Assembly (NCBI GenBank): GCA_013416795.1
Contig: RQSC01000032.1
Location: 281,315 to 345,314, forward strand
Length of the DNA stretch: 64,000 nt
Reading direction: 5' to 3'
DNA from: Prasinococcaceae sp. CCMP 1430
Lineage: Eukaryota > Plantae > Prasinodermophyta
Shown: positions 28,526-47,556 of the stretch, piece by piece
Numbering within the stretch: the stretch's first letter is position 1
How the letters are laid out: each line of letters opens with the position of its first letter
Translations under genes and position numbers: made by a program
The notes under the pieces: model-generated
Databases searched by the model: none
Told to the model about the DNA's origin: nothing
What the model saw: only the letters and a program-made list of their open reading frames with translations

Positions 28526-28988
28526 CGCCGCCGCTCCCACCGCTCGCCGCCGCCCTGCCCACCGCGCCACTGTGGCGCCCCGCAGCCATCGTACCCCCAC
28601 CCCCCACTCGCACCCCAGCTGACGACGCCACGTCAGTCTTAAAGAGCACAACTCGCGCCACGTCGACGAAAACGGATAAGTTTCTGTGTTCTGTTTCTCA
28701 ATTGCACCCTTTTGGTATATTCTGATGATCATTTGCGTTGTTTTTGTCCGGAAACTTTTCGCGAAATTACATTCCGAAAATGAGATCCTCGAGGAAAGCG
28801 CGTGGCGTGCGTGCGTGCTCCCGCGGTGCGCCACACACACGCTGCGCGCAGGCGTCAGTAGGGCGGGAGGTGCCGGGCGGTGTCGGGATCGACTGCGTGC
28901 CTGCGCATGGTCCTGCGGCGCGCTGCGGTGACGGTCGGCTCTCGCGCGGCGGCAGGGGCGGCGGCGGCGGCGGCGCGGCGCGGCAGCG

Positions 28989-30987
28989 ATGACGGCGGCG
29001 CGGCCGGTGGCCGGCGGCGCGCGGCCGCCGGCGCTCGACGCGCTCCTGCTCAACCGCGATGCCAAGGCGGTGCGCTCGTCAAAGCGCGTGCTGTGTTGGC
29101 TACGCCAGGACCTGCGCACACACGACAACGCCGTGCTGCTGGCGGCGGCCGCAGCTGCGCGTGAGGCGGAGGGCGTGTCGGTGCTGCCCGTCTTTTGCTT
29201 CAACCCGAGCACCTACGCGGCGAAGCTGCCGCTGACCGGCGAGGCCAAGACGGGCGCGCGCCGCGCGCAGTTTATGCTCGAGAGCGTGTCGGACCTCCGC
29301 GAGCGGCTGCGTGCGCTGGGAAGCGACCTGCTGGTTGCCGTCGGCGAGCCCGAGGTGGTGCTCGCCGAGCTGGCCGGCGACGCCCCCGCGGCAGTGCTCA
29401 CGCACGGCGAGGCGTGCACCGAGGAGCGCGACGCCGAGCGCGCCGTGGCCAAGGCGTTGCTCGCGCGCTGTGGCAACAGCGCGCTCGTGCGTGTGGAGGG
29501 AGGCTTTACAATGTACGATGAGCGTGACCTGCCGTTCGACTTGCGCGCCATGAATGACGTCTTCACGCCCGTACGAGGCAAGGTGGAGAAGAACTGCGAG
29601 GTGCGGCAGGCGTACGCCGAGCCCGCGAGCGGCGAGCTGCCTTTGGGCGGCTTCGCTGGCGCGCCAGGCCTGGGCAGCGAGCTCCCCTCCCTCGAGGCGA
29701 TTGGCGTGGATCCCGAGGCCGCCGCCGTGGCACGCGCTGCCCCCCACAGGCTCGCGGCGCTCGACTTCAAGGGTGGCGAGAGCGCCGCGCTGCAGCGCGT
29801 CAAGTACTACCTGTGGGACACGGACAAGGCGAGCACATACTTCGACACGCGCAACGGCATGCTCGGCGGCGACTACTCGACCAAATTTGAGCCCTGGCTC
29901 AGCGCCGGCTGCCTCAGCCCGCGTCACGTCTACGCCGAGCTCATGAAGTACGAGGACAACCGCGTGGCCAACAAGTCCACCTACTGGATTCGCTTCGAGC
30001 TGCTGGTACGCGACTGGTTCCGCTGGTATGTGTCCTAGCTTGCTGCGACGCCACCCACTGACGCCAAGCTCTCACGCGCCCGCTCGCTTTTACACCGCCC
30101 GCAATGCCTCTCCACGCCGCCTGCTCGCGGGGGCGCCCGTCCGTCGTTGCGCAGTGGCGCGACTTCTTCCGCTGGTGCGTGCCACATGTGCGCGCGAGGC
30201 GCTGAGCGAGCGCTCGGTGCGCGAGCGGCAAATGCTGGCGTGGGTGGCGATTTCCTCGAGCCCTGAGGTCTGGCTCGGTCGGACACACCCAGGTGCTGAC
30301 CCCGTCGCGCGCGCGCGCGCGATGTCCTGCAGGTACGCTCAGAAGCACGGGGCGCGCATCTTCATGCTCTCGGGCCCGGCGCGCCGCCACGCCAAGTGGC
30401 GTGCAGACCGCGCGCTGTTCGAGCGCTGGGTGGAGGGCAGGACTGGCGTCCCGCTCATCGACGCCAACATGCGCGAAATGGCGGCGACGGGCTTCATGTC
30501 GAACCGTGGTCGCCAGAACGTGGCGTCTTACCTTGCGCTCTCGCTTGGCGTCGACTGGCGCCTCGGCGCCGAGTACTTCGAGTCAGCGCTGCTGGGCTAC
30601 GACCCAGCTTCCAACTGGGGCAATTGGGCGGCCGCTGCCGGCGTCACCGGTGGGCGCGTCAACAAGTTCAACCCGACCAAGCAGTCGAGGGACTACGACA
30701 AGGACGGGGACTACGTGCGCGCGTGGCTGCCCGAGCTCAAGGACGTGCCCGCCCCCTTCTGCCACGAGCCGTGGCGGCTCACGCCGCAGCAGCAGCAGGA
30801 GTTTGGTTGCGTCATCGGCGTCGACTACCCGAAGCCGGCCGGCGAGGTCCCCGTGTGGTCGGGCGAGAGCGGCGGCGGCCGCGGCGGCGGCCGCGGCGGC
30901 CGCGGCAAGGGGCGGGGCGGCCGTGGCGGCGGCCGCGGCGCTGGTGGGCGGCGCCAAAAGAAGATCGTCTACCAGTATGACGACTGA
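28989..30987 (+). CDS. CRYD: Cryptochrome DASH; exons 28989-30005, 30155-30174 (micro-exon), 30333-30987; alternative form 28989-30025 + 30333-30987
   Basis: WLRQDLRTHDN, GARRAQFMLESVSDLR, GGESAALQRVKYYLW, YFDTRNGMLGGDYSTKFEPWL..GCLSPR, TGVPLIDANMRE...TGFMSNRGRQNVASYL, DWRLGAEYFES.L..YD..SNWGNW. Confidence 0.95.
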
Positions 30988-31103: not shown

Positions 31104-33335
31104 TCACATGCCGCGGTAGAGCTTGACGTACTCCTCGGCCGACCGCGCCCACGAGTTGTCCACCGCCATGCATCGGTCCGCTAGCGCCGACCACTGCTCC
31201 TCGCGCTCCTTGTACATCGAGATGGCACGCTGCAACGCGCCCTCGATGTCGCCCTCGCCCGCGCCGTCGAAGACGAAGCCCGTCCCGGCAGCGGGGTCGG
31301 CGTCCACGTCGACCACCGTGTCCGCCAGGCCGCCCGTGCGCCGCACGAGCGGGGCGGCGCCGTAGCGCTGCGCCACCATCTGCGTCAGGCCGCACGGCTC
31401 GAACATGGACGGCACCAGCACGACGTCGGCGGCGGCGTACAGGAAGTGCGAAAGCGCATCGTTGTACATCAGGAGGCAGCGGCCCGCGCCGCCTTCTCGC
31501 ATCTCGGCGGCGAGGCCCTCGAACTCACCGGCGAGGTGGCCCGATCCGAGCAGCACGAACTGCGCGCCCATGGCCTCCGCGCGCGCAGCGGCGTGGCGGA
31601 TGAGGTGCACGCCCTTCTGCGGCACCAGCCGCGACACGCACACCAGCAGCGGCACGCGCTCCCCGTCCTCGGGCACGTCAAGCCCCAGCCCGCGGCGCAC
31701 GTACTCCTTGCACAGCGCCTTGCCGTCCTCGGAGACGCTGCCGTAGCGCGTGGGCAGGCACATGTCCCTCCGCGGATCCCACGACGCCGTGTCGATGGCG
31801 TTCAGCACCCCCGAGTACTTGGTGCGGTACGTCGTCAGCGTCTTGTTGAGCCACCCGCCGCCGCCGCCCAGCGTCTCCTCGCGGTACGAGGGCGACACGG
31901 TGGTGACCGCGTTGGTGTAGACGATGCCCGCCTTAAGCAGGCTCATCCGCTCGGGATTGTGCCCGATCGTGCGCTCGTCCACCGCCTTTTCGACCACCGC
32001 GTAGCTCTCACCGTCGAGCCCCGTGTAGTCGAGCTCCTCCGCCTTGACCTCTCCCGTGTGGTCCAGGTTGTGGATGGTGAGCATCAGCTTCTGCTTGTCG
32101 AGCCCCATCTCGTGGTACATGTCCCAGTACAGGAGCGCCGCGGCGCAGGTGTGCCACTCGTGCAGGTGGATGACGTCCGGCTGGCGCATCGACTCGCGCA
32201 GCAGCTCGAGGCTGGCGCGGCAGAAGAAGAGGTACGCCTCGCGCTCGTCATAGCCGCCGCCGTACACGCGCTCGCCGCGGAAGAAGTGGTTCTGCGGCCG
32301 GAGGAGCAGCACGCGCACGCCCGAGATCTCGCCCACGAAGGCGTCGACCATCACCTCGCCCCCACGGTGGTACGAGCCGTACGTGCGCTCGTGCGTGAGG
32401 TTGTTCACCGCCGATTCGGGGATGCACTCGTAGAAGGGCAGGATGACCTCAACGTTGTGGCCGCGCGCCGAGCACGCGCGCGAGAGGCCCGTCACCACGT
32501 CCGCCAGGCCGCCCACCTTGGCCACCGGCGCCATCTCGGCGGTGATGTGCACCACGTGCAGCGGCGACGCGTCGGGCTCGGCGGTCACGATGGATGCGGG
32601 CGGAGCGGCGAGCGCCTCCACGCACTCGGGCCGCTCCCAGAACGGCGTCGCGTCCTCGGGCGACGGCCACGCGATGTCCTCGCGGCGCATCACCGCGATG
32701 GGCTCACCCGCGTCGGCCGGGGACGCCGCGCCGTCCGGCATCGCCTCGGGCGCGACAGCGGGCGGCGGCGCCACCCTCGCCGCTCGCTCCTCCGCGAGCC
32801 TCGCCTTCTGCTCCGCCGCCTCCGTCCGCGCGATCAGGTCGGCCTTCTCCGCCAGCAGCTCCTCGTACAGCTTGCGGTAGCGCTCCAGCCGCTCCGCCGC
32901 GCTCTCCTTTCCCTCCGCCGTGCTCTCCTCTCCCTCCGCGGACTCCTCAGCCTCCGCGGCGTCGGCCCCTGCCAGCGGCTCATCGGTCTCGGCCTTGGCG
33001 GCCTCGTCCTTCACCTTAGCCTTCTCCTTCTTCGCCTTCGCCTTCTTCGCCTTCGCCTTTGCCGCCGGCGCTTCTGCCGCGGCCTTCTTGGCGTCGGCGC
33101 CGTTCTTCTTCGCGGGCGCCTGCTCGGCCTCCTGCGCCTCAACAGCCGCCTCGGCCGCCTCGGCCGCCTCAACCGGGCCGTCCTCTTCCTTTTCCGCCGC
33201 CTCCGAGGCCGTCGCCTCCACCTCGGACGTCTCCGTCTCGACGCGCGACCCCGACGCCCCGGAGCGCACCACCACCGTCCTCGCTCGCGCGCCGCGCGCG
33301 GGAACGGAGCGGCGAGCCGCCGCCGCCGCGCGCNT
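31104..33335 (-). CDS. Soluble starch synthase (GT5, SSIV/SSV-like) with transit peptide and coiled coil; start codon reads ANG (N at 33334, probably ATG)
   Basis: HVVHITAEMAPVAKVGGLADVV, IHLHEWHT, MLTIHNL, VTTVSPSY, VSRLVPQKGVHLI, VPSMFEPCGLTQMVAQRYG...VRRTGGLADTV. Confidence 0.92.
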   Translation of the reverse strand, partial: XRAAAAARRSVPARGARARTVVVRSGASGSRVETETSEVEATASEAAEKEEDGPVEAAEAAEAAVEAQEAEQAPAKKNGADAKKAAAEAPAAKAKAKKAKAKKEKAKVKDEAAKAETDEPLAGADAAEAEESAEGEESTAEGKESAAERLERYRKLYEELLAEKADLIARTEAAEQKARLAEERAARVAPPPAVAPEAMPDGAASPADAGEPIAVMRREDIAWPSPEDATPFWERPECVEALAAPPASIVTAEPDASPLHVVHITAEMAPVAKVGGLADVVTGLSRACSARGHNVEVILPFYECIPESAVNNLTHERTYGSYHRGGEVMVDAFVGEISGVRVLLLRPQNHFFRGERVYGGGYDEREAYLFFCRASLELLRESMRQPDVIHLHEWHTCAAALLYWDMYHEMGLDKQKLMLTIHNLDHTGEVKAEELDYTGLDGESYAVVEKAVDERTIGHNPERMSLLKAGIVYTNAVTTVSPSYREETLGGGGGWLNKTLTTYRTKYSGVLNAIDTASWDPRRDMCLPTRYGSVSEDGKALCKEYVRRGLGLDVPEDGERVPLLVCVSRLVPQKGVHLIRHAAARAEAMGAQFVLLGSGHLAGEFEGLAAEMREGGAGRCLLMYNDALSHFLYAAADVVLVPSMFEPCGLTQMVAQRYGAAPLVRRTGGLADTVVDVDADPAAGTGFVFDGAGEGDIEGALQRAISMYKEREEQWSALADRCMAVDNSWARSAEEYVKLYRGM

Positions 33336-34008
33336 GAAATTGGTGTGATTCCGCGGTTTGTGTGCGTGGTCGCGGGCGCGGGCGCGAACGGATGAGGCGG
33401 CTGCCGGGTGCGCCGGAGTGAGGGAGGGGGGTGAGGGAGGGGGGCCCACGCACGCACGGCCGCGCGCGCACGCGCGCGCGGGGCCGCGCGCCGTGGGCCG
33501 CCAGTCGACACCCCATCAAAACGGGTGTGATTATTTCATCGCCGTCGAATCAATCGCTCTGAATCAATACGTACTATAATAAACGCGGGATGATGAAATT
33601 CGAGAGTCCGTGTAACGTTCAGGTCGAAGCGCATGCGTGCGCACGCGCGCGGGGCGGGGCGCGGGCGCGCGATCGAATTTGGACCCTATCGCGGCAGAGC
33701 GCATTTCTTTACCCTAATGATGCCGCGCAGTGGTTGGGGTTGGATGCGCGTCCCCGCCTCCGCGCGTTTCGGCGCCCGCCTCTGCGTTCGAACGCGCGCG
33801 GGTGCGCCACAGCGCGGGCGCGGCGCGCAGCGCCGCCGCGGCTCGGGCCCGAGGGCGGGGCGGCGCTCCGCCACTGACGCGGAGCCGCGGATCCGAGGGC
33901 GGGCACTTCCCTCTTCCCTCCTTCACCCTCCCCCCTCCGCGCCCGCGACCCTCCTCCGCGCCGGCGCCGCGGCCCCGCGGCCACACGGGCGCTGTCCTCG
34001 CGGCCGCC

Positions 34009-44406: not shown

Positions 44407-44978
44407 NNNNNNNNNNNNNNNNNNNNNNNNNNNNNNNNNNNNNNNNNNNNNNNNNNNNNNNNNNNNNNNNNNNNNNNNNNNNNNNNNNNNNNNNNNNNNN
44501 NNNNNNNNNNNNNNNNNNNNNNNNNNNNNNNNNNNNNNNNNNNNNNNNNNNNNNNNNNNNNNNNNNNNNNNNNNNNNNNNNNNNNNNNNNNNNNNNNNNN
44601 NNNNNNNNNNNNNNNNNNNNNNNNNNNNNNNNNNNNNNNNNNNNNNNNNNNNNNNNNNNNNNNNNNNNNNNNNNNNNNNNNNNNNNNNNNNNNNNNNNNN
44701 NNNNNNNNNNNNNNNNNNNNNNNNNNNNNNNNNNNNNNNNNNNNNNNNNNNNNNNNNNNNNNNNNNNNNNNNNNNNNNNNNNNNNNNNNNNNNNNNNNNN
44801 NNNNNNNNNNNNNNNNNNNNNNNNNNNNNNNNNNNNNNNNNNNNNNNNNNNNNNNNNNNNNNNNNNNNNNNNNNNNNNNNNNNNNNNNNNNNNNNNNNNN
44901 NNNNNNNNNNNNNNNNNNNNNNNNNNNNNNNNNNNNNNNNNNNNNNNNNNNNNNNNNNNNNNNNNNNNNNNNNNNNNN
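44407..44978. other. Assembly gap (N run)
   Basis: 572 N flanked by A tracts. Confidence 1.
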
Positions 44979-45035
44979 AAAAAAAAAAAACGCGCAAAAA
45001 AAAAAAACGCAGGGAGATCCCAGATCGCGGCCCTG

Positions 45036-46618: not shown

Positions 46619-47556
46619 NNNNNNNNNNNNNNNNNNNNNNNNNNNNNNNNNNNNNNNNNNNNNNNNNNNNNNNNNNNNNNNNNNNNNNNNNNNNNNNNNN
46701 NNNNNNNNNNNNNNNNNNNNNNNNNNNNNNNNNNNNNNNNNNNNNNNNNNNNNNNNNNNNNNNNNNNNNNNNNNNNNNNNNNNNNNNNNNNNNNNNNNNN
46801 NNNNNNNNNNNNNNNNNNNNNNNNNNNNNNNNNNNNNNNNNNNNNNNNNNNNNNNNNNNNNNNNNNNNNNNNNNNNNNNNNNNNNNNNNNNNNNNNNNNN
46901 NNNNNNNNNNNNNNNNNNNNNNNNNNNNNNNNNNNNNNNNNNNNNNNNNNNNNNNNNNNNNNNNNNNNNNNNNNNNNNNNNNNNNNNNNNNNNNNNNNNN
47001 NNNNNNNNNNNNNNNNNNNNNNNNNNNNNNNNNNNNNNNNNNNNNNNNNNNNNNNNNNNNNNNNNNNNNNNNNNNNNNNNNNNNNNNNNNNNNNNNNNNN
47101 NNNNNNNNNNNNNNNNNNNNNNNNNNNNNNNNNNNNNNNNNNNNNNNNNNNNNNNNNNNNNNNNNNNNNNNNNNNNNNNNNNNNNNNNNNNNNNNNNNNN
47201 NNNNNNNNNNNNNNNNNNNNNNNNNNNNNNNNNNNNNNNNNNNNNNNNNNNNNNNNNNNNNNNNNNNNNNNNNNNNNNNNNNNNNNNNNNNNNNNNNNNN
47301 NNNNNNNNNNNNNNNNNNNNNNNNNNNNNNNNNNNNNNNNNNNNNNNNNNNNNNNNNNNNNNNNNNNNNNNNNNNNNNNNNNNNNNNNNNNNNNNNNNNN
47401 NNNNNNNNNNNNNNNNNNNNNNNNNNNNNNNNNNNNNNNNNNNNNNNNNNNNNNNNNNNNNNNNNNNNNNNNNNNNNNNNNNNNNNNNNNNNNNNNNNNN
47501 NNNNNNNNNNNNNNNNNNNNNNNNNNNNNNNNNNNNNNNNNNNNNNNNNNNNNNNN
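46619..47556. other. Assembly gap (N run)
   Basis: 938 N. Confidence 1.

Follow-up and report, generated by a model that had tools for sequence, protein, structure and literature searches.

A duplicated 20-nucleotide exon tail as a probable pair of mutually exclusive coding cassettes in a Prasinoderma CRY-DASH gene

This study focused on a CRY-DASH gene in a stretch of 64,000 nucleotides (nt) of DNA from the green alga Prasinococcaceae sp. CCMP 1430 (contig RQSC01000032.1, positions 281,315 to 345,314), hereafter the window, in which the 20-nt tail of an exon is present twice. The two copies probably constitute a pair of mutually exclusive coding cassettes. Cassette A, an extension of the first exon, would be retained in mRNAs in which the strong donor GTATGT (30026) joins exon 3 directly, and cassette B, a micro-exon, would be included through splicing of the weaker donor GTACGC (30006) to it. 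Joining of A to B would be blocked, by analogy with known animal genes, as the single CTGAC of the intron before the micro-exon, the predicted branch site, sits just 25-35 nt from the stronger donor in the two species compared. The two cassettes place different residues at an active-site tryptophan position of the photolyase fold, Trp in isoform B and Val in isoform A, and the Val would be dictated in part by the GT of the first donor. The evidence comes chiefly from two assembled sequences of a sister species, each carrying one cassette, and from the conservation of the whole arrangement between the two species.

Two cassettes in one gene

The gene lies on the + strand and runs from the ATG at 28989 to the TGA at 30985-30987. 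The common part of its first exon (28989..30005) ends with TTC GAG CTG CTG, encoding FELL, and is followed directly by donor 1, GTACGC (30006..30011). The same position opens the 20-nt extension (cassette A, 30006..30025), which encodes V-R-D-W-F-R-(W), its Val codon GTA doubling as the start of donor 1, and which is followed by donor 2, GTATGT (30026..30031). Farther downstream is a 20-nt micro-exon, TGGCGCGACTTCTTCCGCTG (cassette B, 30155..30174), encoding W-R-D-F-F-R-(W), the canonical CRY-DASH motif; it stands between an acceptor, GCGCAG (30149..30154), and donor 3, GTGCGT (30175..30180). Both routes end at a common acceptor, CTGCAG (30327..30332), and at the common part of the last exon, (W)YAQKHG... 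to TGA (30333..30987). A first-pass annotation of the same DNA had described these donors, the micro-exon and the acceptor, and its coordinates were exact throughout. It had also called the micro-exon a near copy of the extension, and the two 20-mers do match at 15/20 positions; the repeat runs on into the donors, with 20/24 identical bases between 30009-30032 and 30158-30181.

An identity of 15/20 is unremarkable when taken alone: a partner this similar exists within 400 nt for about 7% of random 20-mers of the window. The complete arrangement, in which GT-20 nt-GT precedes AG-20 nt-GT and the two 20-mers share 15/20 bases or more, is unique in the 64 kb on both strands. That the duplication of the cassette is not a product of chance is settled by its conservation in a second species and by the transcripts described below. 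A 12-nt repeat that brackets the whole unit (CTGCTGGTACGC and CTGCAGGTACGC) is absent from the relative and was treated as a coincidence.

All four possible joins were translated. Each of the single-cassette joins, which read FELLVRDWFRWYAQKHG or FELLWRDFFRWYAQKHG, gives an open reading frame (ORF) of 563 amino acids, in agreement with the earlier statement that both routes are in frame. Route A (30025 to 30333, with the micro-exon skipped) reads FELL-VRDWFRW-YAQKHG, and route B (30005 to the micro-exon and on to 30333) reads FELL-WRDFFRW-YAQKHG. A cassette length of 20 nt is not divisible by three, so the frame is kept only when exactly one of A and B is present; the use of both cassettes, or of neither, produces a frameshift, and the frameshifted joins meet no early stop in this GC-rich sequence.

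Spliced forms in a sister species

After the gene model of Prasinoderma coloniale, which is dealt with below, the next best protein match was a cluster (P0002) from ocean assemblies, with 76% identity over exon 1. A genomic contig of this relative (L001) has the same anatomy: its 20-nt extension is identical at 20/20 positions and is followed by GTATGT, and its micro-exon, TGGCGCGATTACTTCCGTTG, lies between CAG and GTGCGT. Two proteins of the 90% cluster of P0002 represent the two routes. P0084 (608 amino acids) carries WRDYFRW and comes from a 1,880-nt Logan contig of run ERR1719247 (its DNA is L002), and P0086 (565 amino acids) carries VRDWFRW and comes from a 1,850-nt JGI contig of sample 3300018870 (its DNA is L003). 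Each protein spans nearly its entire contig, and both contigs are intron-less. L002 consists of exon 1, the micro-exon and exon 3, and uses the homologues of donor 1, with the same hexamer, and of the micro-exon acceptor CAG. L003 consists of exon 1, the extension and exon 3, with its junction at the site homologous to donor 2. Both can be mapped piecewise to exons of L001, where the two cassettes are present together, and they differ from each other only at seven bases of the cassette and in a short stretch near the 5' end.

The junction between the extension and exon 3 is impossible to obtain from unspliced reads, and since the longest run common to the two cassettes is at most 5 nt (judged by eye from the 20-mers), an assembler could not have crossed from one to the other. 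From the lack of introns, and from what may be the start of a poly(A) tail in L002, we infer that both contigs are derived from RNA. Both mRNAs exist in the sister species, then, and come from one kind of locus. As both spliced forms are found as contigs from this alga, alternative splicing, probably mutually exclusive, is real in the lineage, and the two routes that the first-pass annotation had set out are genuine alternatives, L002 following the micro-exon route and L003 the extension route. Mutually exclusive use of the cassettes very likely holds for the present genome too.

A pattern covering the four joins, when run against the loci collected for this analysis, matched L002 and L003 only. 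The same pattern found no match among JGI metagenome contigs, a collection that evidently does not include these metatranscriptomes, and a degenerate pattern for the extension and its donor likewise had no match in that collection. One further member of the protein cluster, P0083 (250 amino acids), resembles a different CRY-DASH in its N-terminal third (FELIWRDYFRC) and is identical to the sister protein in the rest; it is probably a chimeric metagenome assembly.

Conservation between the two species

The coding sequences of the window gene and its counterpart in the relative, taken from end to end, show 78% identity in protein and 76.5% in DNA, and the same codon is used in 65% of the conserved degenerate codons. 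Around the cassettes, identity between the species is 0.88 at the end of exon 1, 20/20 in the extension and 7/8 at positions +1 to +8 of donor 2, and is 0.46 in the rest of intron 1; it is 17/20 in the micro-exon and 8/8 at positions +1 to +8 of donor 3, and 0.42 in the rest of intron 2. All three donors are kept in the relative. The changes in the micro-exon, two synonymous and one Phe to Tyr, follow a coding pattern. Conservation of the in-frame 20-nt intron head in related algae, to which the first-pass annotation had pointed as informative, is thus complete between these two species. In this comparison the extension behaves as exon and not as intron, and it is more strongly constrained than coding sequence on average. 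Such extra constraint is to be expected of bases that are at once codons and the beginning of an intron.

The first codon of the extension, GTA, ends in A in a gene where G+C at third codon positions (GC3) is 89%. It is kept in both species because it supplies the GT(A) of donor 1, and since donor 1 needs GT at that codon, the residue there must be Val (GTN). The replacement of Trp by Val may, at least in part, be a constraint of splicing rather than a functional choice, a point that the earlier annotation had missed.

Branch sites and the AG-free tract

In all four introns verified by transcripts, two from each species, a single CTRAY occurs, always CTGAC, where 0.13 CTGAC would be expected per intron. 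As one CTGAC is found in every verified intron, it is likely to be the branch site. In the last intron it lies at an ordinary spacing, 33-39 nt before the acceptor; the window copy (30296..30300), at 33 nt, is the sole CTRAY of intron 2, as is its counterpart in the relative. The predicted branch site of intron 1 (30058..30062), again the sole CTRAY of the intron in both species and conserved in the alignment, is placed differently, at 93 nt from the micro-exon acceptor in the window and 96 nt in the relative. It comes 35 nt after donor 2 in the window and 25 nt in the relative, and 55 nt and 45 nt, respectively, after donor 1. From this CTGAC to the acceptor the sequence is 63-67% pyrimidine, compared with 47% for the body of intron 2. 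Ahead of the micro-exon acceptor, the run without AG measures 84 nt in the window (30069..30152, 67% pyrimidine) and 146 nt in the relative, where it takes in all of intron 1, and those before the last acceptor measure 38 nt and 54 nt. AG-to-AG gaps of such length make up 1.4% (84 nt) and 0.17% (146 nt) of those in the window. A single AG just past the window CTGAC is 6-7 nt from the predicted branch A, which is closer than the minimum of roughly 8-12 nt that the AG of a 3' splice site needs (PMC7969005).

Distant branch points of this kind were first shown, as a principle of exclusivity, for alpha-tropomyosin (PMC7969005, PMC2991248), and those of OGDH lie 25-41 nt from the upstream 5' splice site, below a steric threshold of about 50 nt (PMC7969005). 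By analogy, donor 2 would be too near the branch site of the micro-exon to be spliced there and would go to exon 3, giving isoform A, while donor 1 would be far enough away to be joined to the micro-exon, giving isoform B. We infer, on good grounds, that exclusivity of the two cassettes is likely to be steric in this way. A search for enrichment of CTGAC before AG across the window gave no signal over background, as it holds too few introns, and the argument is built on the four verified ones. RNA pairing of the docking/selector (Dscam) type was also considered as the selector and rejected, the inverted repeats being different in the two species, as was RNA structure more generally, since folds of the whole region and of each cassette were no better than those of shuffled sequences (z -1.1 to +0.5).

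It is possible, although we place it on the unlikely side, that exclusivity is not enforced at the level of splicing, and that all four combinations are made while only those in frame give a stable protein. The branch site is a prediction, intron 1 contains other YTNAY motifs, and neither the inverted repeats nor the folds revealed a conserved RNA pairing, all of which would fit this explanation. However, the frameshifted mRNAs are without premature stops that could trigger their decay, and the lone CTGAC, the long AG-free tract and the richness in pyrimidines are conserved in both species.

The lesion-pocket tryptophan

In alignment, the Val of the window extension corresponds to the Trp of FELIWRDYFRF in Arabidopsis CRY3 (2J4D/2VTB), in line with the first-pass assignment of this position. 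Glu325 and Trp328 of AtCRY-DASH are the counterparts of the active-site residues Glu274 and Trp277 of Escherichia coli photolyase (PMC5812317), and the Leu that had been cited for plant CRY1 at this site is Leu296, which replaces the photolyase Trp277 in AtCRY1 (PMC6378743). Among 144 motif matches in the related sequences collected for this analysis, W occupies the first position in 130. The only sequences with V there are the read-through and isoform-A sequences of Prasinoderma and one unrelated homologue, P0149; W at position 4 occurs only in sequences of the Prasinoderma group. P0149 (L005) reads VRDYFRF, its Val being constitutive with no intron nearby, and P0123 (L006) has a constitutive Ile at the Trp position. 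Both come from AT-richer organisms and, from their sequences, may be natural Trp-less variants of CRY-DASH.

Two residues, both in one helix, distinguish the isoforms. In isoform A, Val takes the place of the Trp and a new Trp follows three residues on, roughly on the same face of the helix one turn later; the remaining residues of the pocket (Glu, MSNRGRQ, SNWGNW) do not vary between the isoforms. Isoform B has the complete active-site set, namely Glu and Trp (FELxW), Asn and Gln (MSNRGRQ) and the second aromatic residue (SNWGNW), of which isoform A lacks only the first Trp; against the TIGR02765 profile, isoform A scores about 10 bits below B. Isoform B therefore looks like a complete canonical CRY-DASH and would be a normal CRY-DASH of the photolyase type, acting on cyclobutane pyrimidine dimers (CPDs) in single-stranded DNA. 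Isoform A would have a remodelled lesion pocket, with weaker or altered binding of substrate. The toggle between repair and photoreception that the first-pass annotation had suggested is an attractive hypothesis. A fuller scenario, in which regulated splicing (by light, UV or time of day) switches between a CPD-repair enzyme and a pocket-remodelled protein for signalling or for other lesions, with exclusivity provided by the distant branch point and the whole device predating the split of the two Prasinoderma species, seems to us rather doubtful as a complete account.

Another explanation is that only the micro-exon route, with its canonical Trp, is functional, that use of donor 2 is noise, and that the extension has been kept as the signal-bearing 5' end of an intron. 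It would account for the near-universal W at the first motif position and for the lower profile score of isoform A, and the P. coloniale gene model that takes route A, PRCOL_00002120, is faulty in other respects. Nevertheless, in one metatranscriptome there was enough isoform-A mRNA for it to become the assembled path, and the extension is exactly 20 nt long, is open in frame and is fully conserved together with donor 2, whereas the intron from 8 nt further on is only 46% identical. Frameshifted products without an early stop would make splicing errors costly, and other CRY-DASH homologues have Val or Ile at this site constitutively. We consider this explanation quite improbable.

Origin of the duplication

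The 20/24 repeat would be explained if the exon tail and its donor had been duplicated in tandem. Intron gain by tandem duplication had been offered in the first-pass annotation as an alternative to the splice switch, and it is supported only in part, because core chlorophytes already possess an intron 3 nt away. In Volvox reticuliferus (L008, around 3221) and Myrmecia bisecta (L007, 2770-3070) this intron is in the Arg codon (WRDFFR/F), 3 nt upstream of the site of Prasinoderma intron 2 and in the same phase, and it may be an old intron that has slid by one codon. A GC-rich relative (P0004) has no intron in the gene, and two other eukaryotes (L004 and L005) have an intron after STYW and none at the Prasinoderma site. 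L004 (P0061) was considered as a third relative with the switch and rejected, given its intron after STYW and its plain WRDYFRF. Intron 2 may be old and intron 1 new, and the duplication predates the split of the two Prasinoderma-like species. Intron gain by duplication and use in splicing are not mutually exclusive.

More radically, the repeat could be a mere relic of intron gain or exon-tail duplication, with one cassette decaying and the two contigs coming from different strains, each with a single, constitutive route. A repeat that includes the donor points plainly to tandem duplication as its origin, and several relatives (P0004, L004, L005) are without an intron at the site. Yet no cassette and no splice site has decayed in either species despite divergence to 78% protein identity, and L002 equals L003 outside the cassette and the short 5' stretch, both fitting the single structure of L001. 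A relic is, on this evidence, very improbable.

Weight of the evidence

The reading of the cassettes as a mutually exclusive pair is the probable one, and a number of points weigh against it. Each isoform is represented by a single assembled contig, and the sample type of the two contigs was deduced from their structure. The protein collection contained no P. coloniale transcript, a query with exon 3 returning only a genomic read-through ORF (P0088) and a 60-residue query across the junction finding no match in it. The full identity of the extension could in part be due to its position at the 5' end of an intron. The branch site was predicted by motif, and looser YTNAY motifs are situated farther from donor 2; in the relative, donor 1 is 45 nt from the CTGAC, near the animal threshold, which may not be that of this alga. 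Finally, the effect proposed for a pocket with Val and a shifted Trp is drawn from comparison of sequences.

Identity of the gene, its public model and its surroundings

The G+C content of the window is about 70%, and that of the published P. coloniale genome is 69.8% (PMC7455551). The best protein match of the translated region was the EukProt model PRCOL_00002120 (P. coloniale), which is identical wherever the exons coincide. Against the profile TIGR02765 (crypto_DASH), exon 1 of the window matched positions 1-287 (260.8 bits) and the last exon positions 295-431 (208.5 bits), the 7 positions missing between them being the alternative segment. The full-length isoforms of the sister alga scored 512.9 bits (B) and 503.2 bits (A), both above the curated cut-off of 317 bits. 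The locus is a CRY-DASH gene.

PRCOL_00002120 follows route A. It has shortened N- and C-termini and omits 37 conserved codons in frame (ASTYFDTRNG...HVYAE, 29829-29939) as a GC...AG "intron"; transcripts of the sister alga retain the equivalent stretch, and the skip is probably an artefact of annotation. The pipeline used for this genome combined ab initio, homology and RNA-seq evidence (PMC7455551). The model is unreliable and carries little weight as evidence for route A. The public gene model is wrong at this locus and conceals the canonical isoform.

Upstream of the CRY-DASH start, an ATG at 28907 opens an Arg/Ala-rich frame resembling a presequence (28907-28990), in a different register from the CRY-DASH ORF. 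A similar presequence occupies a separate 5' exon in the sister alga (L002 1-150, L003 1-145), in frame in L002, where it contributes to the 608 amino acids, and out of frame in L003 through a 2-nt indel. The difference in frame could mean that targeting to organelles varies, or could stem from an error within a GC repeat. Downstream, an intron-less ORF of 781 amino acids (31104-33449, - strand) converges on the 3' end of the CRY-DASH gene, with about 117 nt between the stops. Its catalytic part resembles starch/glycogen synthases (judged by eye), it has a long N-terminal region rich in Ala, Glu and Lys, and a single N interrupts the sequence close to its 5' end. Apparent low-GC islands within 44-48 kb of the window (about 44440-45000 and 46620-47500) are runs of N, that is, assembly gaps, and have no biological meaning.

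Comparison with known systems

The transition from photolyase to cryptochrome and the roles of CRY-DASH proteins are open questions, with loss of the lesion-stacking Trp as one hallmark. In this alga and its relative, one gene would yield both versions of the pocket helix, conserved across species, as a natural pair of isoforms that differ in two residues. It would also be a rare and clearly delimited example of mutually exclusive splicing from a green alga, one whose lineage branched off before the chlorophyte-streptophyte split. To our knowledge, exclusivity by means of a distant branch point has so far been documented only in animals. The 20-nt micro-exon and the layout of its branch site resemble those of vertebrate muscle genes, which bears on the age of this splicing logic. 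A search of the literature found no report of such a splice switch for CRY-DASH or for other photolyase/cryptochrome genes.

As a protein, the product resembles CRY-DASH/class 0 photolyases (Arabidopsis CRY3, 2J4D/2VTB; Synechocystis, 1NP7), which it matches over the full length with its photolyase and FAD-binding domains. Isoform B keeps the Glu, Trp, Asn, Gln and second Trp of the family, while isoform A departs from it in that Val stands in for the first Trp and a Trp appears three residues on. Isoform A is similar to plant CRY1 (Leu296; PMC6378743) in having an aliphatic residue in place of the lesion-stacking Trp. Plant CRY1, however, also differs in its second Trp, in surface charge and in a C-terminal extension, whereas in isoform A only two residues are changed and the second Trp is kept.

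As to its origin, the arrangement can be set beside the 1989 model of Rogers, which reportedly has introns created by tandem duplication of an exon segment. In keeping with that model, intron 1 is flanked by a direct repeat of the exon tail, and an intron is missing there from several relatives. It differs from the model in that both copies are still coding, and given the intron of Volvox and Myrmecia 3 nt upstream, one of the two introns may be old.

In its splicing, the gene is comparable to exons 2/3 of alpha-tropomyosin, to alpha-actinin and to exons 4a/4b of OGDH (PMC7969005, PMC2991248), where homologous segments that go back to a tandem duplication are used one per mRNA. It shares with the animal exons that have distant branch points a predicted branch site 25-35 nt from the upstream 5' splice site and a long, AG-free, pyrimidine-rich tract (84-146 nt) leading to the acceptor. 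Unlike the animal cases, the upstream alternative here is a 20-nt extension of a constitutive exon, formed through an alternative 5' splice site, and the cassettes are not a multiple of three in length, so the reading frame enforces exclusivity as well; the host is a deep-branching green alga, and its branch point is predicted from a motif. The CRY-DASH cassettes are a known kind of splicing device in a new form, at a functionally telling residue.

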